Of a stretch of 32,000 bases of DNA, positions 4,714-30,528 are shown in pieces (position 1 is the stretch's first letter; the number at the start of each line of letters is the position of its first letter). The stretch comes from Paramicrosporidium saccamoebae KSL3 (lineage: Eukaryota; Fungi; Cryptomycota). The translations under genes were made by a program, and so were the position numbers. A model generated the notes under the pieces. The model saw only the letters and a program-made list of their open reading frames with translations, searched no databases and had not been told where the DNA came from. The DNA lies in NCBI GenBank assembly GCA_002794465.1, contig MTSL01000206.1:37313-69312 (forward strand). Reading direction: 5' to 3'.

Positions 4714-6042
4714 ATGGTAGAGTCGCGACCCGGAAGTGCGAATGGCAGCCGAGTAATAAAGTATCGTCGACTACGACCCTTCAAAACGGATGAGATCAAG
4801 GTCCTGTTGGTGGAGAATATTAGCACTATCGCCGAAAAGATGCTCCGCGAGGCGGGCTACCAAGTATAGCAACAATCATGCGCTAAGCATTAGGTGGAGG
4901 TTTGCAGCAAGTCATTGCCAAAGGAGGAGCTGCGTGAAAAGCTCAGGACCGTGCATGCCCTGGGAATCAGGAGCAAGACACAAATCACAGAAGACCTCAT
5001 CAAGGAAGCACCCTGTCTCCTCACCATAGGCTGCTTCTGCATCGGGGTTAATCAGGTAGCCCAGGAGGCGGCATTATCCCGTGGAATTGCCGTCTTTAAC
5101 TCACCCTTTAGCAACAGCCGCAGCGTTGCCGAGCTGGTCATTTCCGAAATCATCACTCTAGCGCGACAACTTGGTGACCGAAACCGGGAAATGCACAATG
5201 GACAATGGAAGAAGACGGCAGGTGGTTGTCAAGAGATTCGTCGCAAAATATTGGGCATTGTTGGCTATGGCCATATTGGAGCCCAATTGTCCGTGCTGGC
5301 TGAATCAATGGGAATGCAAGTGCTCTTCTATGATATTCAACAGATTATGCCACTTGGCATGGCAACTCCCACCGAAAGTCTGGACGAGCTGCTTGAGCGG
5401 TCCGATTTTGTGTCGTTGCATGTGCCCGAGACGAGTGAAACTATCAATATGATCGGTGCCAGGGAGTTAAAGCTGATGAAGCCGGGTGCAAAGCTTATTA
5501 ATGCCAGTCGTGGTTCAGTTGTGGATTTGCTGGCATTGAAGGAGGCCCTGGAATCTGGCAGGATGGGTGGTGCAGCATTGGATGTGTATCCAGAAGAACC
5601 CGCTGCAAACGGTCCATGGAGTACTGGTCTGGAGGGATTGGACAATGTCATCTTGACACCCCATATTGGGGGCAGCACTGAAGAGGCGCAGGCTGCTATT
5701 GGAGTGGAGGTGGCCACTAACATGATCCGATTCCTTGACCAAGGCACCACGTTGGGCTCCGTCAACTTTCCAGAGCTTGATCTGCGCGTCAACACGTTTG
5801 AGCAGCCCAGCACTCCGTATCCGTGTCGAGTGCTTAATGTACACCAGAATGTTCCTGGAGTCTTGCTCAAGATTAACCAGATCCTGGGGCAATTTAACAT
5901 TGAAAAGCAGGTCTGTGAAAGTCGCGGACAGTATTCCTACATCATGGCGGATGTGTGTGCCGGCTGTGAGACAGACTTGGACCATATTTTTGAAAGTATT
6001 TTCCATCTACCTGAGGCAGTGGCTACTCGTATTGTTTATTAA
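4714..6042 (+). CDS. SER3: D-3-phosphoglycerate dehydrogenase with C-terminal ACT domain
   Basis: Exons 4714-4863 and 4894-6042, with a 30-nt intron 4864-4893. Motifs LRPFKT..IKVLLVENI, GIRSKT, FNSPFSNSRSVAE, GIVGYGHIG, LINASRG, LTPHIGGSTEEAQ. The start could alternatively be ATG 4678. Confidence 0.95.
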
Positions 6043-6051
6043 ACACTAAAT

Positions 6052-6910
6052 CTATGTGTGCAACTGAGAGAGGTCTTCCTTGGCGAGGCTTATTTGGGTC
6101 AATATTTGCTGGTACTGCATGGCAATCTTGCTGACTGACGGGCCGAGCTGCTGGAAGAGCAGCAGATTGGTGGCCCCCTCGCTGATCCGATTATCAAGTT
6201 CCTCCAGTAGTTCCTCTGAAACTGCAACACAATTTTGCAATCTTGTAGTTCCGCCCTGGTAAATCTCCAATTTTGCTTCCATTTGAATAATCCTACCGAT
6301 GAGACTGAAATGCGAGTGGCTACTGTAATTTAAGATCCAGTGACTCAATAACCGCACGGATATAGATGGAAAAGGTCCCCAGATAGCGCACTGCTACCGG
6401 TTCTGCCCCTAAAACAATTTTCTGACACGCCTCCTCGACCTGATGAAGCTTTTTAGTAGAATCCACCAGCGACGCCAAAATGTCGTCAAGTTTACTTCTG
6501 AATTCGTCCGTGCATTCTTGGATTTGTCTTTGGGCGAGCTGCACGGATTGAAGGAGTGTGGATGTAGAGTGCACAGGGATACTGGGGAAGAGGAGCTGTC
6601 CAGTCTGAATCAGCGGCGCGACAAGCTGCTCAATGCCCTGCGAAGCTTGGTTAGCAGTCATGGTAGATTGTTCAATGTCAAGAAAAGGAAAATCCTGCTG
6701 GGCTTGGGCAATATTGACACTGCGGGAATTGCCATTCGAGAGTGCATTCTTGAGCAATCGAAGTTGCCAGAACTGTTCAAGATGTCTTTGATGCTCGCCC
6801 ACAATCATCTCAAACTGCGCATTTTCCTCATTAAGGAGAGTTAAAAGCTGGGCGAAATGAGGAACATCCAGAGCAGTGGCCAAGTTTTCTGGCAGTGAAC
6901 ACTGTACCAT
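6052..6910 (-). CDS. HAUS4: HAUS augmin-like complex subunit 4 (HAUS4)-like coiled-coil protein
   Basis: Exons 6910-6324 and 6292-6052, with a 31-nt intron 6323-6293, giving 275 aa. VPHFAQLLTLL resembles HAUS4 NPYFSKLLLNL. YIRAVIESLDLKLQIIQMEAKLEIY resembles YLSAKCEAMILKLRMEELKILSDTY. FQQLGPSVSKIAMQY resembles YEVLGEEFDRLVKEY. Reference recalled from memory. Confidence 0.65.
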
Positions 6911-7040
6911 CGCACGGGCCAATCAGGACTTGCCTGTTTAGACAATCGACACCCTGGAATGTCCGGGTGGTACTGTTGCTTTTTGCACACCAGCAACCAC
7001 CACAGCCCTACAATCCGTCTTTTCAAGCAGCAGCCGCTGG

Positions 7041-8468
7041 ATGAGCAGTGGCTGGGAACACCCCTACCCCATCCACCGTGGTGGCGATGACATTAAGCCG
7101 CCGGAAGAGGGCTTTCCCCTGACTCCCAGAAGCGAGGAGCAACACGAGGATACCGGCACGACATTCTGGACCAATGCGCCCAAACTGGAAGTCCTGCAGA
7201 ATTGGGTCTACTCACCAGCATCCTATTCAAGCTCTGAGGATGGATACTTGGAGGACACGGAGCACATTGACTTTGCGGCGCTAAAGGATCATTTGAATGT
7301 CTTCCGACCTGGAAATGATGTGGATGTGAGTGATCACAAGAAGGGAAAGTACGTCTTTTATTCCATGCAGACGGGCCTACTGCGTCACCATGTGCTTGCA
7401 GATGTGTGCAAGCACGGACATGGACACGGCTTTAGCACGGGATTGGGAAATGGAAACGCAGCCTATGGAAAAGTCAGCCCCCTCCCCTCCAAAATCCCCA
7501 ATCTGAGCGAAGTCATGCGAAACGGTCCCTTCTGGCTCGACATTTGCAATCCAACCAAAGAGGAGCTGCGTGCCCTATGCGAGATATTCAAAATGCATCC
7601 ACTGACGTTGGAAGGATTGGAGTCGGATGGGGAGGAGATTCGAGAAAAATGTGACGTGTTTGAAAAGTACTACTTTATCTGCATTAAGGCATTTGAGAGT
7701 GACGCCCAGAGTGACGACTACATGCTACCCATCAATCTATTCATGTTGGTCAGTCCAAGCTGTGTTGTCACAATCCACCGTGATCCTCTGGAATTCTCCC
7801 ACACCATTGCTAAACGTATGCGTCTGTTAACGGCTCGGACCGGACTGACGTCGGATTGGATCGTCTACACCATTCTGGAAGACGTGTTGGAAATGTTCGT
7901 GCCGTCAGTGCGGGCCAGTGAGATTGAAATTGACGCCATTGACGATCTTGTGGGCGGCTCCTCTACGGCCAGCACCCGCTCGCAAACCCATTCAGAACTA
8001 TTGGGACGAATTGCCAATTCGCGACGGAGAGTCACACAACTAATCCGTCTAATGTCAGCAAAATCGGACCTGTTTCGAGTCATTGCCAAACGCTGCAGCA
8101 TGCGATTTAGTGAAGATGCGCATCTTTATTTGCGTGATCTGCAAGACCACACGGCCATGGTCGATCAGACGCTGCACCAATATGACGAGTCTCTCAATCG
8201 TTCCCACGCAAACTACTTGGCACTTCTCTCCATCGAAATCAGTGAGACATCTAACCATATGAGCGATGTCATGAAGAAGCTGACTGCTGCCTCCACTGTA
8301 GCGTTGCCCTGGAGTATGATTACTGGTCTCATGGGGATGAACATTTTTGTACCTGGAGGTAACAGCTACCAAACTGAGTCGTGGATCCCTTGGTTCATCT
8401 TTTTCCTCGCCATGTCTGCATCCTCTGTCATTATCTACTTTGTTGGCCGTCGTCGCGACTGGTTTTAA
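7041..8468 (+). CDS. CorA-family Mg2+ transporter (fungal Alr1/Mnr2-like)
   Basis: Motifs FWLDICNPT, FKMHPLTLE and REKCDVFEKYYF, plus two C-terminal TM helices with the GMN signature (ITGLMGMNIFVPG). Confidence 0.92.
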   Translation: MSSGWEHPYPIHRGGDDIKPPEEGFPLTPRSEEQHEDTGTTFWTNAPKLEVLQNWVYSPASYSSSEDGYLEDTEHIDFAALKDHLNVFRPGNDVDVSDHKKGKYVFYSMQTGLLRHHVLADVCKHGHGHGFSTGLGNGNAAYGKVSPLPSKIPNLSEVMRNGPFWLDICNPTKEELRALCEIFKMHPLTLEGLESDGEEIREKCDVFEKYYFICIKAFESDAQSDDYMLPINLFMLVSPSCVVTIHRDPLEFSHTIAKRMRLLTARTGLTSDWIVYTILEDVLEMFVPSVRASEIEIDAIDDLVGGSSTASTRSQTHSELLGRIANSRRRVTQLIRLMSAKSDLFRVIAKRCSMRFSEDAHLYLRDLQDHTAMVDQTLHQYDESLNRSHANYLALLSIEISETSNHMSDVMKKLTAASTVALPWSMITGLMGMNIFVPGGNSYQTESWIPWFIFFLAMSASSVIIYFVGRRRDWF

Positions 8469-8681
8469 TAAAACTTCAATCAAGTATTTCAGGAGCGAAC
8501 TATACCCGTGATGAGGCTAGATAGGTCGGCCATAGCGGCTCGTTGACGAGATCAAAGGTTATGCTCGTGTTGAGGCTAAAAGTTCTTCATATCCAGCTCA
8601 CTAATGAGGTTACAACTCAATCATACAAACCTTATGCTCGGCTCCCTAAAGACAAATGAATTTTATTCACATGTTTCCGAG

Positions 8682-8717
8682 TTGGCGGGATAATTGGGCG
8701 GGTGCAATGTTCCCGCC
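8682..8717. promoter_or_regulatory. Cluster of three E2F-like GGCGGG/CCCGCC boxes upstream of the geminin-like gene
   Basis: TTGGCGGGA at 8682-8690, TTGGGCGGG at 8694-8702 and TTCCCGCC at 8710-8717, 30-65 nt upstream of ATG 8747. They resemble the TTTSSCGC / TTGGCGGGA E2F consensus. Confidence 0.4.
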
Positions 8718-8746
8718 CATCGTGGTACTCCCCCGTGCTAGTGGTG

Positions 8747-9142
8747 ATGCTGAGTGCCTTTCCATTGAAGGATGTTGAAAATGCTCCAACGACAATCAAA
8801 AAGTCCACATCACACTTGGCAACCAAGTCGGGCCATAAACAGACCCGCCGTCCCCTAAGCGACTTGAGTAACGGCGCCACTGATAACGCATATCAGCCAA
8901 TGGACTCTATGGAGACGGCACTGCGGGAGACACTGGTGGAGAACCGTCGGGTCCATGAACTCTGTGAAACATTGCGGGGCGAAAATATCGAGCTTAGAGG
9001 AAGGGTTGGGGAGCTGGCTGTTGTCACCATGCTGTACGAGGTGGCCAAGGCGGAGATTGAAGAGCTGACCAAGAAATTAGCCCAGTTATCGCCTTTGGAC
9101 ACTGAGAACGACAACAGCGCATTGTCGAATAGTGACTTGTAA
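8747..9142 (+). CDS. Small D-box plus coiled-coil protein, geminin-like (131 aa)
   Basis: First ATG in the ORF is at 8747. D-box RRPLSDLSN (RxxLxxxxN) at 8846-8872. The coiled coil ALRETLVENRRVH...ELAVV...IEEL aligns ungapped with geminin [13 protein letters not shown]...ELAEV...IERL. The gene is probably real; the family call is tentative. Confidence 0.55.
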   Translation: MLSAFPLKDVENAPTTIKKSTSHLATKSGHKQTRRPLSDLSNGATDNAYQPMDSMETALRETLVENRRVHELCETLRGENIELRGRVGELAVVTMLYEVAKAEIEELTKKLAQLSPLDTENDNSALSNSDL

Positions 9143-9149
9143 TAATAAA

Positions 9150-9305
9150 CAGCATGTAGATAGCCGGATAATATGATGAGTGGCACAGAAATATAATGAT
9201 ATGGTAGTATATTGGCATGAGACACGACAATGTGATGATGCGGTAGCATGTCATAATAGCAAAACATGCTAACATGACAATACGACAATATGATAGTATG
9301 AAAGA
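9150..9305. repeat. Degenerate AT-rich short-period repeat between convergent genes
   Basis: Recurrent (G/A)CATG, ATATGAT and GACAAT words at about 8-10 nt spacing; no exact unit. Confidence 0.45.
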
Positions 9306-9316
9306 CTCGGTATAGT

Positions 9317-11612
9317 TTATTTCCTACGCAACACCTCATTCTCTCTCCTCAACATTTCCAACTCTCTCCGCATCAACTCCAGACCATCCGGCTGGGGTGA
9401 TTTTATTGAATGCACCGTCCGATGCACTCCGGCTGAGGCAAAGGGACGAACACCGCGTTGGTCAATGGACATGGAACGTCGTTTCCGCGGATCCCACGGC
9501 TCGGCAGGCGAATAGGCGGAGAGGTTTGGGGGGAGGGACACTTGGGGATCCTCCACCATCGGTCGGCCCTCCCATTCAGAGAAGCCATTGTAATGGATCG
9601 TTGGGTGGTATGAGGCAGATCCATACAAACTGTCGTTTCGACGGGTGGAATTGCGCAGCTCCAAAAGTTGCTGACGGATCAGCTCGTTCAGCAGTAAAAG
9701 TTGATCAAACTGAGACGGATGGACAAAAATCGGTGCTGACTGGCTAAAGTCCCGTCCATAGGGAACCGAAGTGGAGGGCGTCTCTCCATTCCCATTCACC
9801 TCTTCGTAAAGAGGGTAGGCGGGTCCACGTGGATAAGGAGCGGGCAGACTATCGACGCTCTCATGAACCATCCGAGCTGGCTGAGGTTGAGAGACATGGA
9901 ATCGACTGGGTGCTCCATTTCCGACTTCATCAGGGGGGATGGAAGGAATCTCTACCTTGAACCGACTCCTCCTCCCATCCTCCAATTCGCCCTCAATGAT
10001 GCTCCCCACTAGAGGGAGTTGAGTATCCATAGGAGATGTTGGATTGTCCCGGGCTGATTCGAGGACGCTGAATCTTCCCTTCCGTACTCCACCTGCATCT
10101 TCGCCTTCCATACCATCTACCAGATCCAGGGGAGTCACTAAGCCCTTTTCTTCAGTGGGGGAGGATCTGGTGCTGGGGTCGCCAGATGGTGGCTCCGCCT
10201 CCACCACAAACCGACTACACCGTTTGTCGCCAATGGTCCGCACAGTGCCTTCATCGGTCGCCTCGGGACTATTGGGCGCAGTGGATGGCTCAGTGCCTAC
10301 TCCGCCCCCTCCCACCTCAGTCTCTGCCTCGGACTCGGAAAAGTCCCATTCTTGTCCCGTCATCTCGCTAGTCTCAGTGGTTGCATTATCTGCCAATTGT
10401 TTCACCAGTTTGGTCACTCGTGGACGCTGTTCCAGAGGAGGGATCACTGCCAAGATTGTACTTGCCAAATGACTCTTCTTTTTGGCTGCTTTAAAGAAGG
10501 GATGTTTCAGCAACATCTCAGCTGTGGGTCTATAGACATTGTTAGAATGGTTTAAAGAATACCGTTTGGTGGGATCCCTTTGCAGACATTGGTCAATCAT
10601 TTCCTTAAATGTCCGACTGTATTTGTTCTTGGACCGTTTCCGATCCAAACTTGGAGGTGCGCTGCTCAATGTCAAATAAATCACCTTCATGGGCGGATAT
10701 TTGGAGAATGGCGCGTGGCCATAGGCCAGCTCGAGGGCAGTGATACCAAAGGACCAAATGTCCGCTTTAGTGTCATAGCCCCGTGTCATCTCCATCACCT
10801 CTGGCGCCATCCAACACGGCGTCCCCACAAAAGTCTTTCTCAACCCACGTCGCTCCAAATCCTCCATCAGCGAGGAGCTCACACCAAAGTCGGCCAGTTG
10901 CACCGTTCCGTCAACATCCATTAGTAAATTTCCCGCCTTGACGTCGCGATGAATGTGACTATCCCGATGGAGGTAATCCAAGCCCTGCAGGGCCTGCAGA
11001 AGAATGGTCGCAATGGATGCCTCGTCCAGGCCGTCCCGGAAGCCCGTCTTCATAATGTCCAAACACGATCCGCCACGTAGGAATGGCGTCACTATCCACA
11101 GCTTTGATTCGTGCACAAAGGAAGCCAAGATCCGCAATAGATTCGCATGTTTACACAAGGTCATGACCTGGATTTCCTTGCGAAGCTCGTCAATTTGATT
11201 CCGCTCAAAGTGATCCAAGTCGATCATTTTTACGGCCACGGTCATGTTGAGCGGCACATAGGTCGTGTGGTAAACAATTGCAGAGGAGCCAAAGCCTAAA
11301 ATTTAATATTGCATCGGCACAAATACCTATGGCCGGTCCGATAGTGTAATCTTCGGGGCTCATGGAAAAGGGCATCTCCTCGCCGGTATAAATGGTGGGA
11401 GTGCCAACTGAATCTACGGACGAGGCCAGCGAAGCTAGAGCCGACCGGTTTATCCGCACCTCCTCGTTGCTCTGCATGACCGGTGGTGGTGGAGTGGCTT
11501 CGGGCCTCGTCACCAATCCACCCTGCTTGTCCATCATCATTTCATTCGACAGAATGGACCGCAATGGCTCCTGGGGACGCTCCTCGTCGTCTTTTGCAGC
11601 AAGCTCGTCCAT
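9317..11612 (-). CDS. STE20/GCK-VI (OSR1/SPAK/Fray-like) Ser/Thr kinase
   Basis: Exons 11612-11327, 11295-10563 and 10529-9317, with introns of 31 nt (11326-11296) and 33 nt (10562-10530). Splicing restores IGFGSSAIV and KRPTAEMLLKH. Motifs HRDVKAGN, DFGVS and RKTFVGTPCWMAPEVME...YPPMKV are characteristic of OSR1/SPAK. The exact start ATG is uncertain. Confidence 0.92.
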
Positions 11613-11699
11613 GCTGCAATTCGCTTGTTTCGTCTTCCAAAGGGTTCTGATTGGTGGGGTCTTAACCGCCGCATGAACACTACCAAGTCACAGCACAAT

Positions 11700-13629
11700 T
11701 TATACAATGTGAGTATTAGGTTTCTCGTTTAGCAGGGCCGTCTTGAGCGAGGGAGAGGCTGCGAGTATGGCCTCCGGAACCTTGGTCACGGGCAGGACGT
11801 GCATCTCGTAGTACGCAGTGTCTGACGCACCCAAACAAAACTCTGTACAATTCAGTAGTGTTCCTCTATCGAACGGATTCTTCAGCTTTGTCCCATGGCT
11901 GCACTTGGGTCCATGTTCATGGTCCTCAGCGGGGACGGTCGTGTCTGGATTGAAATACTCCAGACGATACCAGTTGGACACTTCATTGGTAGTCTGATTC
12001 TTGGCAATCTGCCATGTCTGGACAACGAGCAGGAAACCCACCCATAGAATAAAAGTGCACTTTTCCACCATACAGACAAAAACAAAGGGGGCGAGGATGG
12101 CCTGACGACACAGTCTATTGCTCATAATGCAAAAGCTGCCCGCCGTCACATCTGCAATGGGCAAAGTCTGCAAATCTACAAAAATGAGCATCCCCAAAAT
12201 TGGTACAAAGATAAGCGAGAATGACAAAGACAATCAACGAGGGGACAACTGAATAGACGTAAAAGATAAAGTAACGATGATTTCCCACTCCCACACAGCT
12301 GTTCGTCCATGGACAATGGTGATCAAACTTTGCCACACAGAAATCACACACTCGACAATGCTTTGACCGTAGCGGCTTCTTTATCCGACATGTCACACAA
12401 TACTTTCTCCGATTCAGCTCCGACTCGCCCACCAACTCCAATATGAGTTGATGTCGGTCAGCGATGGTGAGGGGGGGCCGAAGAATGCCCGGATCAGTCT
12501 GATTGACCCGACGCAGAAAATATACAGAAGATAGGACAGTGGCAGTCCAAAAAAGATGGAGGAGATAGTGGGAAGGTGTGGCGGGATAGAGGACAAAGAT
12601 ATCCAGAAGGAAGAGGGGTGGGATCATGACGGCCTGGTAGGCAAACACCATGCCAGTTTCAGTGGGATTGATGGAGGGGAAGAAGAGTGTACGGATGTAC
12701 TTGTCATAGACCATGAATATCGCAATCACAATTCCCAAGGCCAACACCCAGGGCGACACAGTCCACAGAACCAACGAATACAGCGGATACACAATACAGG
12801 GTACAATCTTGCCCATAATAAACTTGGCCCGTCCTCGGGCGGGACGCCAATAGTTTATGTTGAGGGGGGCGAGATCTTTCAGCAGATTCTTGCGCCCAAA
12901 CTCAATAAGGAGAATGGAGAACCATTTGTAATGGTCCTTTTGTTTGGCCCAATCGGCTGCCGTCTTTCCTTCTGCGTCTTTGACGGACGGATCGGCACGA
13001 TATTTGAAGAGCAATCGAATAATTTCATAATGGCCTTTGATGACGGCCCAATGGAGCACAGTGGTACCGCCATTGTCCATAGAATCGGGATTGGCTCCGT
13101 CCTGTAACAGGACTTGCACAGTCTCCACATGACCCCGGAACGTGGCCCATAAGAGGGCAGTACGTCCAAATCCGTCCCGCTCCTCCACATCCACTCCCAA
13201 AGCCAACAAATAAAGCACTGCCAATGTCTGTCCATGTTGTGCCGCCAAATGCAGCGCGGTGTATCCCGGTTGGTCCCGTAGTGCCAAATCTGCTCCAAAC
13301 GTCACGAGGGTCGACATGGCGTCAATGTGTCCTTTGGTGGTCGCCCAATGGAGGGCCGTTGACCATTGTTCACCTCCCAATGAATTAACTACTGCGCCCT
13401 TTTCGAGGAGATAGCGCAGGATAGATGTGCGATCATTCAGCGCGGCCCAATGGAGCGGCGGGATTTGATCATTCGGACTTGGCGCGTGTACCAAGTCTGG
13501 CTGTTCTGTCACCAGAACCTGCACCCTAAAGAGGTCTCCCACCTGGGAAGCCGTCCAGATGTTCATCTTGTCCTCTTGAGGCTCCACAGGTGCCACTGTC
13601 GGAGGCTCGCAAACAGGTGCCGTGACCAT
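11700..13629 (-). CDS. AKR1: Ankyrin-repeat DHHC palmitoyltransferase (Akr1/ZDHHC17-like)
   Basis: Exons 13629-12207 and 12175-11700, with a 31-nt intron 12206-12176. N-terminal ankyrin repeats ([30 protein letters not shown]), TM helices, [32 protein letters not shown] motif and NPFDRG. Confidence 0.93.
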
Positions 13630-13885
13630 AAACAACTTTAAGATTTTTGTTTAATCTTTTGACCCGAATTTGAACTGGTAATTTGCCAATGAGCCATAAA
13701 CTGTGAGGTGTAGAATATGGGTGGGGTGGGGTGGAATTGCTCATTGAGTAGAGCTTCTCTTACAGATAATTCTGTTTAACCGACTGCTTAGCTGGTTGTT
13801 TAGCCAACGGTCAAATTGTCTATACAACGTCTCCGCCCCGTATAATACGTCCTTTTACAATATTACAGGATAAAATGCCTCTATT

Positions 13886-15087
13886 TTACAGATGAAAAGG
13901 TAGAAAAGATTCGGTTCGCTCATCTAACGTGGCACTCAGATTGAATGAAGACTGTCCCCTATTCAAGGTATAAACACGGTCAACCAATGCTTCGGCAGCT
14001 GTGGGGAGCACCATGCCGGTTCCAGTAATTTGATAATCACCTCCATGGATAGGCCCAACGACACTCAAATCCGTTCTGCTGAGGGTTCCGTGGAGAAATG
14101 GACTCGGAGCCACTAATTCAGGCATTACAACAAACGACTTTCCATCACGTTGATTGAGCAGGAAATCAACCAAACCATGGACAGACATTTCTTCCGAAAT
14201 GGTCAGCGTAGTGGAGGCAACAGAAACCCGTTTGGAATTTGTCTTTCGGACCCGGTTGATCCGTCTATTAATGGCCTCTTTGATGAGTTGAGGATCGACG
14301 TTTTCTTGGCCAGAACCGTGATCCGAATCGTGATCAGAGCCATGATCAGAATTCTTAATCTCCTCAACCCGTTCTAGAAAGGACTCTCCGTCATCGTCTA
14401 GTTGTTTAAATTCAAGACCTTCTCCTTTCAACAACTCTATCAGTGATTTGGTCGCTTTGGAGATGAATGCTTTCATCTTGCCCCCATCATTGCGAAAGAG
14501 TACAACAAGATCTGACTGCAGATAATAGAAATAGGGGATGGTTCCCGTCTTGAGGCCATTATAGAGCGACAACAATGCCTTCCTCCAACTGTCCACCATG
14601 GATTTAAAGAATTGACGTTCCAGTGAGTCGCTTTTCTTAGCCAGGATATTGCATAGACGTCGGGGATCAGGTAGTGCGGGAAATGGGAAACGGTAGAAAT
14701 CAAACAGATTGGTCAGCTCCGCAGGACAGTCCGACTTGCCGAGCTGTGTCTTCCACGGGGCAATAGATGCGTCAGTGGTGATGGTGAGCTTCTCAGAGAG
14801 GGTCCAAGACACTTTTGGTCGCGCCACAGTTAGGATGGGCGTCTTGGGCTTTACAATTTCGTTGGTAGTGATGTGACCGAACGGCTTCCTCTCATTTGGG
14901 AGGGATACTTTTGGTGGTGCAACATTGATACATCCAGTGTTGTGTTCTTCTCTGACGAGTGCATCTCTACTCTGCTTGGTACGCTTGCTTTTGAGCAATT
15001 TCTACACAATCAATCGCCATGACTGGATACCTTTAGCTCAGAGGGAAGGAGCGGCCGCTTCGGTCCATCATCTGCATCGCCAAGCAT
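13886..15087 (-). CDS. DONSON: DONSON (downstream neighbor of SON / humpty dumpty) replication initiation factor
   Basis: Exons 15087-15031 and 15001-13886, with a 29-nt intron 15030-15002, giving 390 aa. WRKALLSLYNGLKTGTIPYFYY..LVVLFR...AFISKATKSLIELLKGEGLEF matches DONSON [28 protein letters not shown]...[21 protein letters not shown]. Also SWTLSEKLTITT and PELVAPSPFLHGT. Reference recalled from memory. Confidence 0.85.
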
Positions 15088-17685: not shown

Positions 17686-20600
17686 TCAGCTTGTGTAACG
17701 AGAAGAACGCCGAAGATGCAATGACGTTGGGGTTTCGGTCACGCTTCTGGGACTATGCCGTCGACCACCAGTCCTTACTCTTGGGGTAATGACCTCCTCA
17801 TCAGTGTCCAATTGAGAGTCTGAATCTTCCTCGTCCGATCGGATTCGTCGTCGTTTTGGTCTAGACTGCTCAGATCGATGGCTGCGCTGCTCAGACCGAT
17901 GACTGGACTGCTCCGGTCGATGAATAGGCAAATCGAGTCCCGCCCTCCGCCTTGCTCTGGCTTCTCTTTCCGCTGCGCCATGTCGCATCGGAGTTTCATG
18001 ACTATCAGCGCGATTAGAATGATTAGCACGGTTCCCATGATTAGAACGGTCTGTAGAATCAGTTGTATTGACGTGTCGGGAGATGCGTCTTGTGCCTCGT
18101 TCAGCACGTTTGACCAGCCGGAGTATTTCAGAGAGTATATAGTCGGCATCTTGGACAATGTCACTGTCGGGGAGATTGTAGACAAAGGCATTTTCATAGA
18201 TGAGCCGGGCATCCCATTCAAATGCCTCAATTCTGCGATGATAGCCATTAATAACCCGCTGATGGAGCAGAGTAAGGTCCATGGGATAGGCAACCTCTTC
18301 CAAATAGTCTGGAAATTGGTGCAAATCCACCGCCTTCTTGAAGGGAGCACCGCGGGGGTCAGCCATCAACTTTTGTAACCCCTCGTCCAACTGTCGGAGC
18401 ACTTCCGAGGTAATGTACTCGGAACAACAGTATGGCTCTCGGTTGGGAGAGTCCTCTTCAAGAATCGTCTCCAACTCCCACGGACTCAGCGGTTCAGGGT
18501 CGTCCGAGAGTGTTAGCCATTCCACAAAATAGCATTGCCAAGGCTTCTCCGGGATCCGATCAGCTGGCACTGTGACCTTTTTCACCCGTGCCTCATAAGT
18601 TTCGTTTCTTCCAAAGACCACACGCACAATCTCACCAGAAGTATAGCGTTGTACGGGTTGAACACTCCAGTGATAACGACAGAATGGGATAATAAAGTCT
18701 GGTTGGTTGTCCATGTCGTAAAATGCAATTTGGATGCGATGTGCACTTGCCGGGATGTGAGTAGGCGGTGGGAGGGATTCACGTGCCTCCATCTTGCGTA
18801 GAATCAACAACTCTACTAGACACCACGTGGGATCGCCAGGGAAAAAGTTCATCGAAATAATCTGACCAAACACTACGGGCGGGAGACGACCCTCAGTCTC
18901 CCATGGTAGCCCATCGTGAAATTGAACTCCCTCCTCTCGAGACAGGAATAAACGGTGTCCCTCGGGAAAGTATGCCACAACATCATAAATTTGGGGCAAG
19001 TAAGGGAACACTTGACGATCCTTCATGGACAGCCACTTGGAGACTTGTTGAACCCGTTCGATGAGTGGACCAGTATCCTCGTCTGATTCAGTAATGACCG
19101 GACGCCTTCTAGAGGATCCTCGATGTCGTAAAGCAGGTCGATCGGGTCTGTACAATGGCTCCTCTTCTTCCTCAAACTCGGGAATTGGGCGGAGTCGGTC
19201 TGAGCGACGTCCTTGACGAGGTGACGCCTCGTGTAGTCTCCTCCGGAAATTGTACGGACCTGGACTAGGCATTTCGTGGTCGGTAGAAGTTATCCCAACT
19301 TCACCGTCCGTCTCAGAACCCGCACTTGCGAGACGATATTCTTCTTCGCCCTCCTCCGCCGGCTGTTCAGCGACCGGAGGTATTTCATCCTCGACATCTG
19401 AGCCATGCAAAACGCGTCTTCGTCGCGATCTTGTGTGCCGAGGAACACTTCCAGGTACCGTGTCTTGAAGTTCCCGATTGTACAAGTCAATTTCAGTGTC
19501 CAGCTGTCGCTGATATAACTGCTGCTGTCTCATCAATACGCCCTCATCAATATCCACCGGAATGGTCAGTGGATAGGACTCTTTCACAATGAGATCATAA
19601 GGGTTTCGTTCAATTGAAAAAATCTTTTCTCTAGAGGCCAGGTGGGGCGGTCTTTGCGTGATTGCGTCCAAGGCAGTGCGTTGAGAGTCGAAAATGAGCT
19701 CATTCCAATCATCGTGAAAAAATTGCGAAGAAGGAGCTTTGGAGAAGGAGTCGGGAGAGATGCCACATCCAAAAATGGACACTCGTCCTAAATCATCCAC
19801 TAGAGAGAACATGGTCCCGTTCTGTGAAAACCCGCCATCCAGGAATCGGGTATTCTCCAACTGGAACTCGAATATGCGAGTCCCCGTGTGCATGTTCCAC
19901 AGCGCAGCCCGGCCATCACATCCCGCCGACAGGACGATACGATCATCAGCAGGATTGGCAGTGAGAATGTAGACTTCCCCACGGTGATAATGCAAAACAC
20001 GGGGAGATTTCTGACGCTTCGCATCGAAAACGATCAACTCAAATCCTTGGTTGACAGCTGCAACAATCGTTTCGTCATTATTGCAAAATGTCACAATGGT
20101 GACCTTTCTCGGTCTTCCGGGCACTATCATATCCGTGCTATCTCCCAACACGGCGGTTGTGTCATACGGATCTGAAAGCCACTTTGCATCATATCTCCAC
20201 TTTCTTACTGTGCCATCAGACGAACTGGTCACAAATTCTGTTCCTTTAGTGCTGAAATGCACACTGTTAATGTAGCCCTCGTGCTCTTCCAAATATTGTA
20301 CATTGGGCAGGAATATTGAGGGCTGCACACCAGCCTTAATGTCTGCCACATCAGGAACACTGAACAGCCGAACAATCCCATCAGTAGCTCCCGTGATGAA
20401 ACGCAGTCCTGACGGTGAAAAGGAAGCGCAACGGATCTCATCCCGTGCAAGTGATTTGCAATGGAATTTGACTGGGATTGTACTCCAGGTACGCTGTTGG
20501 AGATTGATCGACCAAAACTTGGCATACCCATCTGAACATGTGGTCATCAAAACCAGTTCCTTGCTGGCTCCCTCCACTGGCCGAAATTCCAAGGTAAGGA

Positions 20601-21513
20601 TGGGGGAAAAGGCATTGATGGTGAATAGATGATGTCCAATGCGCAGATCCCAGAATGTCAAATAGCCGTCAATTGACCCGACAGCGAGAACAGTGTTACT
20701 GGGATCCAGACCAATGTCCGAGATGCAGTTTGAGTGAGAACGGAGGGAGTATAATAAAACGCCACTCTTGGCACACCAAATCTTGACAATACCGTCGTCG
20801 CCGCCCTAACAATTTTAACAAAGACAAGTCGTCTACAGTAATGATCCGGTGATCGGACCGATCGAACTGCATACAGTATGATGGAAGTCTATGGCCTGTA
20901 ATCGTCTTCAACTACAACAGCATTAGACAGACCCTTAGGCGACATACATGCAAGAAGCGAGTGGCAGCGACGGCGAGCATATTATCGGCCCAGGGTGATC
21001 CAATCGACCAGGGCAGTAGGAAATTAAGAATCACACCCCGGAGCGGCAATCTCAACGGAGACCTAATTTCAGCCAGTTTGGGCTCTCCTCGCGAACGTCC
21101 GTCACCGGTAAGCTGTCCTCGGAGACGTCCTGCAAGGGACAGAAGGTCTTTGGGCTGGTGCATGGCAAGTTCGCCATCACGGGGCATCAAACTGCGAAGC
21201 AACACTTCCAAACTAGGCAACCCTTCATCAGAACAGCCAGCCATCTATGATTATTACACTGTGTAAACAACTATGGTACGCCATGTTCAAAGGTGGTTGA
21301 CAAGACGTCACCCTGCCAGTTGACGGAGGGTGGGAAGAGCTGCGCACTCTCACAGACTTTAATCAGATGGCGGGCCGCCTGGAAGTGTCCTCTTCGGTGA
21401 AGGAACTCTGCCACCAGTAAATAAATCTGTTTGGTCGCCTCGTCAACCGGAAACTCGCGCTGTGTGCCCGCCACAAGGCCTCCCAATGGTTCTGTTACAT
21501 CCTCGACAGCCAT
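17686..21513 (-). CDS. Bromodomain- and WD-repeat-containing protein (PHIP/BRWD1/BRWD3 family)
   Basis: Exons 21513-21280, 21244-20948, 20911-20837 and 20805-17686, with introns of 35, 36 and 31 nt, giving about 1241 aa. LisH-like IYLLVAEFL...AARHLI, WD40 ITGHRLPSYCMQFDRS..RIITGGDDGIVKIW, Tudor-like PYLPQIYDVVAYFPEGH and a single bromodomain FPDYLEEVAYPMDL...NAFVYNLPDSDI. Confidence 0.88.
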
Positions 21514-21620
21514 TAAGAAATAATTGGTAACAGTAAGGACAGAGGCGCTTAGTTAGTAGAGGCGACTTGGCCAATGGTGCCCACCGGTGTCGTCCCTCCA
21601 AACCGGGGATTCCGCAGTCG

Positions 21621-22121
21621 ATGGGGCCATGTTACCTTCTGGTCTGCACCCTGCGCCATTTTGGTCGCATTTCCGTCCCATTATACACCCACAACAGCAC
21701 CATCATGTCAAGAGCCAGGTTTGGCATTGTAGGTCCCACTGAGGTCGCGTCCCAGCCAATGGCAGACTGTATACAAAGAATGAAAATTGTTTTGAAGAGT
21801 AGGCGGGCAGTCGGAATTTGTGCACCCCAGCTGGGGTTTGACTTTTGTTTACTCGCCTGGCGAGACTACTATGGAAAAATCAGGTTCCTTTGCAATCCCA
21901 AGATTACACCACTGGGCACGGAAACATTTTCTCTGCGAGAAGGTTGTTTGAGTTCGCCAGGCCTGCGACATGAGGTCATTCGGACGCGTGACATTGTCGT
22001 AAATGGAGTAGACCTTGAAATGAAACCAGTGAAATACAACCTCTCAAAACTTGACGCCGCCATCATACAACACGAAATGGATCATCTGGAAGGACGTCCG
22101 TGGCCACCACAAATCAAATGA
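21621..22121 (+). CDS. PDF: Peptide deformylase, probably mitochondrial
   Basis: All three PDF motifs are present: AVGICAPQLG, EGCLS and QHEMDHLEG. The first in-frame ATG is at 21621; the short Arg-containing, acid-free N-terminus could be a presequence. Start uncertain. Confidence 0.88.
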   Translation: MGPCYLLVCTLRHFGRISVPLYTHNSTIMSRARFGIVGPTEVASQPMADCIQRMKIVLKSRRAVGICAPQLGFDFCLLAWRDYYGKIRFLCNPKITPLGTETFSLREGCLSSPGLRHEVIRTRDIVVNGVDLEMKPVKYNLSKLDAAIIQHEMDHLEGRPWPPQIK

Positions 22122-29459: not shown

Positions 29460-30528
29460 ATGTCCGAGCACGCCCTCCGCAATGGTCTCCCGGATGCCAA
29501 CGCCGAACTGCTGTCGGCCGAGGTAGCCCTCGCCTCCCGCGGGCTCTCCCGCTCGTACTCGCTCTCCTATATACAGTCTATGCGGGACAATAACGATCCG
29601 GCACTTCCCCTCCAAATCCAGAACGTAGGCATTCTGCGAGTCTGACATGCTAGATGGTCACATCTATGCTCTCTACGCCATCCAGTATCATGCCTCTAAC
29701 ACCCGATGATGAATCATTCTTGTTTCAACCAGTGCCACTGGGTCAAAAAATCCAGTGCAAGGTGATTCGGAGGAAGCATAGTATGGGGTCGGTTTATCCA
29801 CAGTACGAACTCTATTTGGAAGGGACCAATGGAGCGCGGTTTTTCCTAATGTCTGCCCGAAGGAAGAAAAAGGCCCGTGGTGCAACATACTTGATATCTC
29901 TGAATCGCTTTGATAGCGGTGATTTTGACGAACGCGTTGTTGCCAAAGTCAAGTGCAAAGTCTTTCTGAATTCACATTGTAGATCTAATTTCTTGGGAAC
30001 GCTGTTTACAGTCTACGATGGCAAGCGGGACAAGGAACGCAACGAACGTGCTGCAATACTATACCAACCCAATATTTTTGGGCTCTGCGGTCCTCGCAAG
30101 ATGACCCTCCTTCTTCCTGGCCTCACTTCCGAGGGCCGAATCAAACCTCTCACATATAAATCGGGCAGCTGTCAGTTGCATGAAAAGTTCAAGACTGACG
30201 AGATTGCCGAGATTCTGGTGATGCGAAACAAGACACCACAATGGAATGATGGTATGTATTGAGTAGTATATGACGTTTAGAGTCGGGTTCGTACGTGTTG
30301 AATTTCCATAATAGAGTGTCACAAGCCTCTGTGAAGAACTTTCAAGTTGTTCCCGACTTTGACTGTACACAATACGTAACTCTGTAATGGCTAGTGGACT
30401 ATATTGTTATGCAATTTGGACGGGTTGGAGTGGACTCTTTTACAATGGACTTTCAATATCCGCTAAGTGCAATACAGGCATTTGGGATCACCCTAAGTAG
30501 TTTCGATCCAAAATTGGTATGTGAATAG
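29460..30528 (+). CDS. Tubby-like protein (TULP family)
   Basis: Exons 29460-29624, 29654-29952, 29983-30251, 30281-30364 and 30395-30528; the second intron is 3n with a GTG donor and is less certain. Tubby motifs [49 protein letters not shown] and [29 protein letters not shown]. Confidence 0.92.

Follow-up and report, generated by a model that had tools for sequence, protein, structure and literature searches.

Geminin (GMNN; PF07412; PDB 1UII, 1T6F, 2WVR, 2ZXX) is a small protein whose disordered tail bears an N-terminal D-box and whose central helix spans ~65 residues (~96-160). Its relatives Idas/Multicilin (MCIDAS; 4BRY chain B) and GemC1 (GMNC) are long proteins with extra C-terminal regions and act in multiciliogenesis. 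Geminin has been described as a metazoan addition to licensing control, absent from yeast and with no clear plant homologue (PMC3814758, PMC9448001, PMC11148040). In the heptad register of its coiled coil, Ser96 is position a1, Arg106 is d2 and Ile124 is a5; the first two heptads matter for how stable the coil is, and N-terminal residues of the coiled-coil dimer bind Cdt1 tightly (PMC3814758). In dimers of geminin and Idas the 'a'-position Asn117 takes part in a hydrophilic network, and Idas on its own does not bind Cdt1, its preferred state being a heterodimer with geminin (PMC3814758). A second conserved 'a' Asn is N138 in geminin and N108 in GemC1, and the Trp at the start of the coil already differs in register when geminin is compared with GemC1 (PMC4631479). 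We found no report of a fungal geminin in the literature searched.

Paramicrosporidium is a parasite of amoebae and an early-branching fungus. We analyzed a 32,000-nt stretch (the window) in which a reading made from the sequence alone had picked out a 131-aa ORF at positions 8747-9142 as a candidate geminin in a fungal-lineage genome. The coordinates proved exact, with the start ATG at 8747 and the stop TAA at 9140-9142, and the lineage was also right. The window corresponds to ~37,313-69,312 of contig MTSL01000206.1 from the published assembly of Paramicrosporidium saccamoebae (Rozellomycota), GCA_002794465.1 (PMC5701793). It has 45-53% GC and densely packed long ORFs, and a 131-aa gene is called at the same site in the NCBI record. 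A word-indexed search found the closest orthologues to be P0002 (82% identity) and P0003 (57%), and against these two the ORF had dN/dS values of 0.089 and 0.15. Given the orthologues, the dN/dS of 0.09-0.15 and the conserved synteny described below, the ORF is a genuine gene under purifying selection. A chance ORF might have been suspected from the short length, the lack of a Pfam domain and the antisense ORFs that overlap it, but the homologues, the dN/dS values, the synteny, a conserved promoter block and the NCBI annotation refute that reading and leave it virtually no probability.

Table 1. Features of the 131-aa gene and its flanks, in window positions.
Feature	Position	Strand	Basis or remark
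CorA-type Mg2+ transporter gene, flanking	7041-8468	+	
Conserved promoter block with three GC-rich E2F-like boxes	8681..8720	+	100% identity to L001/L002
E2F-like box TTGGCGGG	8682-8689	+	
E2F-like box TTGGGCGGG	8694-8702	+	
E2F-like box TTCCCGCC	8710-8717	+	
CDS of the 131-aa protein, stop included	8747..9142	+	ORF list, translation, orthologues, dN/dS, NCBI gene call
N-terminal DVEN, part of 'ML...[D/S/N]xEN'	8771..8782	+	Recurrent in relatives
D-box RRPLSDLSN (RxxLxxxxN), residues 34-42, in disordered tail	8846..8872	+	Exact match
Single long alpha-helix, residues 49-114, presumed dimeric coiled coil	8891..9088	+	AlphaFold2, pLDDT >90
Geminin-like core ALRETLVENRRVHELCETLRGENIELRGRVGELAVV, residues 58-93	8918..9025	+	HMMER and hhalign align it with geminin 109-144 and Idas
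Family-specific block VVTMLYEVAKAEIEEL, residues 92-107, consensus VVSMLY[ED]AAKxE[IL]	9020..9067	+	Best-conserved block of the family
AATAAA, poly(A)-signal-like hexamer, putative function	9144..9149	+	2 nt past the stop codon; read from sequence
Protein-kinase gene, convergent flank	9317-11257	-	

A 3-sequence HMMER profile searched against 1.84 billion cluster representatives (E<=1e-3) returned 11 relatives and nothing else. All 11 came from metagenome or read-archive assemblies, and no metazoan geminin was among them. Cluster look-ups gave no informative name for any of the 11 (one was a 'hypothetical protein'), and none carried a Pfam domain. A 12-sequence profile used in a word-indexed homologue search added no members, and two metagenome locus scans yielded no further ones. 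Each locus or contig showed a single family member.

All placeable relatives lie between a CorA gene and a kinase gene, and the order 2-hydroxyacid dehydrogenase, CorA, family gene, kinase, ankyrin/DHHC was found at every locus long enough to judge, in genomes that span 37-58% GC. In the window the conserved run extends from ribosomal L14 through the 2-hydroxyacid dehydrogenase, CorA, the 131-aa gene and the kinase to an ankyrin/DHHC palmitoyltransferase (4894-13635), and it is kept in L003, L004-L006, L007-L008, L009-L010 and L011-L012 while the proteins are only 35-45% identical. Microsynteny across such a range of GC content and at such low protein identity suggests that all these genomes belong to relatives of Paramicrosporidium in which gene order has been unusually stable.

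Two family members have truncated gene calls. At L004 (5701-6225) an apparent intron sets the called ORF apart from an upstream exon beginning MLATTNAEN and from an in-frame segment with the D-box RVPLGNLTN. At L007 (~5830-6381) the D-box RAPLAPLHN is in frame 5' of the called ATG in a segment without a start codon, which implies an upstream exon. A DONSON-domain gene (PF27662) lies near the orthologous locus of one relative (L008, 6676-6963); DONSON is a replication-initiation factor best known from animals.

With the family alignment as input, AlphaFold2 predicted residues 1-48 to be disordered. The D-box that had been reported in this tail not only matches RxxLxxxxN exactly but is conserved across the family: R-x-P-L-x-x-x-x-N/S was present in 12/12 lineages (10 perfect, 2 ending in Ser), within a tail that is otherwise unalignable. 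By chance RxxLxxxxN arose in the first 55 residues of the shuffled protein at a rate of 0.024 per sequence (2.4%). An N-terminal D-box in a disordered tail is also the arrangement of geminin. Generic APC/C D-box substrates such as cyclin B and securin likewise carry RxxLxxxxN, conserved in orthologues, in a disordered N-terminal region, but the window protein has neither a cyclin fold nor a separase-binding region.

A second motif, [D/S/N]-x-E-N, lies 20-80 residues N-terminal to the D-box. As 'ML...[D/S/N]xEN' it was found in P0001/2/3, P0009, P0010 and P0012 and in the inferred first exon at L004 (5701-5859). Human geminin has a KEN 8 residues before its D-box, and by this analogy the xEN motif may, speculatively, be a KEN-like second degron. 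The conserved xEN motif and the R-x-P-L-x-x-x-x-N form of the D-box, which budding-yeast securin shares as R-x-P-L, would also suit a securin-like protein or some other APC/C pseudosubstrate or inhibitor that is not a coiled coil, in which the D-box (with xEN) would be the functional part and the helix a scaffold. We set this reading aside as very improbable, because conservation is best in the long helix and not in the tail and the Pfam scans gave no match to a securin, Acm1 or Mes1-type family; securins are not known to have a 66-residue helix as their framework.

The sequence-only reading had cautioned that the YWK motif ahead of the coil in geminin was not evident, and there is indeed no YWK or other Trp ahead of the coil in the window protein, which has no equivalent of geminin Trp99. 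A Trp motif, W[WYF][TS][VL], was present in 9/12 members, 14-45 residues ahead of the AL core; the window protein and the two orthologues closest to it lack the motif. In the AlphaFold2 model of P0009 a short helix with this motif comes directly before a 73-residue helix. The Trp motif close ahead of the long helix in these relatives may correspond to the single Trp that geminin (W99) and Idas (W182) have at the N-terminal start of the coil; its spacing differs from that in geminin.

Where a coiled coil had been claimed after the D-box, AlphaFold2 predicted one helix of 66 residues (pLDDT >90), with a/d heptads in the register of geminin; the model is of a monomer only, and its a/d pattern is compatible with a dimer. 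Helix length in the family (66-73 residues) is similar to that in geminin. Foldseek with the single-helix model was uninformative (top match vimentin, E 3). Across the family the long helix is better conserved than the tail, with the consensus ...ELE-x-ALRETL-x-ENRRVH-x-LC-x-x-L-x-x-EN-x-EL-x6-LAVVSMLYEAAK-x-EIEEL in alignment A3 and a coil core of AL-x-E-x-L-x-EN-x-x-V-H. Human geminin has the identical residue at nine positions that the family keeps invariant or nearly so (A58, L59, L63, E65, N66, H70, E79, L83 and L90). The C-terminal half of the helix is unlike geminin and holds the family-specific block. We found no counterpart of this block in geminin or the other searched families, and the HMMER and hhalign alignments end before it; it may be a binding site for a lineage-specific partner.

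An ungapped alignment of the window protein with residues 109-158 of human geminin (the sequence used was 100% identical to PDB 2wvr_A) gave the 17/50 identities that had been reported, a number attained in register by 2/200,000 heptad-preserving shuffles of the geminin segment. The profile alignment was ungapped as well and in the same register, placing A-L-R-E-T-L-x-E-N-R-R-V-H on geminin A109-H121; ~38 columns align, covering the N-terminal part of the coil only. The family's hydrophobic positions fall on geminin a/d positions along the entire helix. The invariant Glu65-Asn66 pair falls on geminin E116-N117, with the Asn at 'a', and H70 aligns with H121. The two families conserve the pattern AL-x-E-x-L-x-E-N-x-x-[LV]-H in one heptad register. 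The signature AL-x-x-A-L-x-E-N-x-x-L-H is present as ALRETLVENRRVH (residues 58-70), its A, L, L, E, N and H being invariant or nearly so, and the Idas coil ALGDALVENNQLH has this AL..AL.EN..LH signature in common with the family.

Other parts of the geminin coil differ. The second 'a' Asn, three heptads on, is absent, geminin N138 aligning with Val87 in the ungapped alignment. The family has a second invariant Asn of its own, N80, at an 'a' position two heptads after N66 and thus one heptad earlier than N138. An alignment with a 7-residue gap that sets N80 on N138 (LRGENIEL against LKKENKEL) was seen by eye and rejected, as neither HMMER nor hhalign favoured it. Ahead of the AL core the helix of the window protein is only ~9 residues long, and there is no counterpart of geminin heptads 1-2 (96-109), which are unconserved in the family. 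The protein also lacks the long acidic tail of geminin.

The Pfam geminin model PF07412 (gathering threshold 22.2 bits) did not match the window protein, the 11 other members or the family consensus, even at E<=10; as positive controls, human geminin scored 281 bits and the Idas coil alone 68 bits. The window protein, the members and the consensus drew only weak matches to assorted coiled-coil Pfam families. Five members (P0005, P0007, P0008 and two others) matched the C-terminal 40 positions of DUF5101 at E 0.006-0.3 and four members weakly matched bacterial YabA, both of which are probably coiled-coil noise. Searches with one sequence (Pfam, PDB phmmer) or with the 3-sequence profile yielded generic coiled-coil noise and missed geminin in the PDB, and the window's clade by itself did not match geminin. 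We regard the single- and 3-sequence searches as uninformative rather than negative, since the signal emerged with 12 sequences.

With the 12-sequence profile A3, geminin and Multicilin made up the top five matches among 177,635 distinct PDB sequences. The best was 4bry_A (E=0.0016); 2zxx_A, 1t6f and 1uii were also among these five, the geminin entries being human and mouse constructs, and full-length geminin ranked seventh. With the core-only profile A4, all six geminin-family sequences were the top six in the PDB (E 7e-4 to 5e-3), and the next match was MreC (E 0.023). Idas did nearly as well as geminin (E 0.005 with A4). The ranking of geminin was stable to leave-one-out and to dropping the window's clade. 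Under a shuffle null that keeps both composition and heptad periodicity, the real profile score was reached by 0/20,000 shuffles for mouse geminin and 1/20,000 for Idas. A profile-profile comparison by hhalign of the family with mammalian geminins and Idas gave a probability of 74.8% (P=2.6e-5, 39 columns), a value that would not be significant library-wide. The geminin side of that comparison, mammals plus Idas, was thin because a search with human geminin gave mammals only among the 120 matches listed. We also searched in reverse, with an HMM of mammalian geminin and Idas and filters off, against every stop-to-stop ORF of at least 40 aa in a six-frame translation of the window together with 12 related loci. 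The candidate ORFs of the window and ten related loci ranked as the top 11/1,543 (E 0.004-0.39), and only the most divergent family member was missed.

Set against the generic coiled-coil background, then, geminin and Multicilin were the leading PDB matches and the shuffles were beaten, but PF07412 stayed unmatched. The profiles point to a real resemblance of the coil to geminin and Idas, above that background and modest in strength. The proposal of a candidate geminin is partly supported: the geminin-like profile signal and the family-wide D-box speak for it, and the lack of a PF07412 match, an hhalign probability of only 75% and an alignment of only ~38 columns speak against it.

These shortfalls would fit an APC/C substrate specific to Rozellomycota, with a dimeric coil and no descent from geminin, whose likeness to it arose by convergence of short, charged, Asn-containing coils. 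Such a protein would have another partner and another role, for example as a spindle, kinetochore or cytokinesis factor cleared at mitotic exit. No member matches PF07412, and the search of 1.84 billion representatives reached 11 relatives only and no metazoan geminin. The likeness is confined to ~38 residues at an hhalign probability of 75%, the VSMLY[ED]AAKxE block and the Trp spacing are unlike geminin, and the second buried Asn is displaced. The weak matches to many unrelated coiled-coil Pfam families further mark this as a promiscuous type of sequence. Convergence does not readily account, however, for geminin and Idas coming out best in the PDB ahead of thousands of coiled coils, for a score that heptad-preserving shuffles almost never attain, or for shared residues that are not generic, namely a His and a Glu-Asn pair that occupy one register in both. 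The architecture, too, is that of geminin, with an N-terminal D-box, a ~65-residue helix and small size. We hold independent origin to be a serious contender, with a probability well short of even.

A small protein with an N-terminal D-box and a ~65-residue coil, together with a profile signal corrected for coiled coils, points to the geminin superfamily. Our preferred reading, to which we assign a probability of about 0.5, is that the 131-aa gene encodes a very diverged geminin-superfamily protein degraded by APC/C. The protein would have two parts, a disordered tail with the conserved D-box and a helix of ~66 residues, most likely part of a parallel coiled coil of two identical chains. The D-box would direct APC/C-dependent destruction and so time the protein to the cell cycle, and the coil would have Cdt1 as its target. 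Taken by itself, common descent with geminin is somewhat favoured by the evidence. Inhibition of Cdt1 as the function is a more tentative proposal and falls somewhat below an even chance. The case for re-replication control through Cdt1 is weakened because Idas, a true member of the family, does not bind Cdt1 alone (PMC3814758) and because nothing in the window protein corresponds to the first two heptads of geminin.

The same two points favour a true geminin-superfamily protein that is not a Cdt1 inhibitor: an Idas/GemC1-like or geminin-like transcriptional or chromatin co-regulator acting through partner exchange of the coil. Idas has the coil and yet does not bind Cdt1 alone, and the window protein lacks, or has in different form, the segment N-terminal to the coil with which geminin binds Cdt1 tightly (PMC3814758). 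At 131 aa, however, there is no room for the long C-terminal regions that Idas and GemC1 have, the conserved D-box points to cell-cycle-timed destruction as in geminin, and no heterodimer partner is evident, since with one member per locus or contig we saw no second family member that could play the part geminin plays for Idas. A co-regulator of this kind seems improbable to us.

If the preferred reading of a diverged, APC/C-degraded geminin relative holds, an APC/C-degraded Cdt1-binding coil may have been present in the opisthokont ancestor, surviving in strongly diverged form in Rozellomycota, here in an intranuclear parasite with a genome of 7.3 Mb, and having been lost from those fungi that have been studied; we offer this scenario as possible and a little doubtful. 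True homology would date the origin of the geminin-Cdt1 switch to a time before animals and fungi diverged. Geminin would then not be an animal invention, and some fungi would control origin licensing in the 'animal' way. The protein would join the 'animal-like' cell-cycle parts kept by basal fungi, such as E2F (PMC4862756), and would offer a minimal geminin of 131 residues for defining the essentials of a geminin. Were it not a homologue, the family would still be a hitherto undescribed, conserved one, probably of APC/C substrates, from a parasite lineage that has received little study.

We also examined the region upstream of the gene. The 40-bp promoter block is identical at the locus of the 82% orthologue (L001/L002), at which the sequence farther upstream is unalignable and synonymous sites have diverged to pS 0.54. 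Three GC boxes, including TTTGGCGGG, are kept in L003, the locus of the 57% orthologue, and three E2F-like boxes lie within 210 bp upstream in L011. In L004 and L009 no E2F-like box lies within 400 bp of either called start, and none of the upstream boxes is an exact TTTSSCGC. E2F is retained in basal fungi (PMC4862756). The boxes resemble E2F sites; with no enrichment of the pattern in the window as a whole (20 observed, 13.6 expected), this likeness is no more than a hint.

Elsewhere in the window, Rfam and tRNA scans of the 32,000 nt came back empty, and no Pfam domain was found at E<=0.001 in the ORFs at 87-1616 (509 aa), 6320-6922 (200 aa) and 13886-14998 (370 aa). The ankyrin-repeat DHHC palmitoyltransferase (11700-13635, minus strand) appears as two ORFs that overlap (11700-12233 and 12115-13635), a short intron or a frameshift having split the DHHC domain between the two. 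A BRWD/PHIP-like WD40 and bromodomain protein (17686-20661, minus strand), a peptide deformylase (21567-22121, plus strand) and a Tubby-domain protein (29654-30262, plus strand) are ancestral eukaryotic genes kept despite the reduced genome of the parasite.
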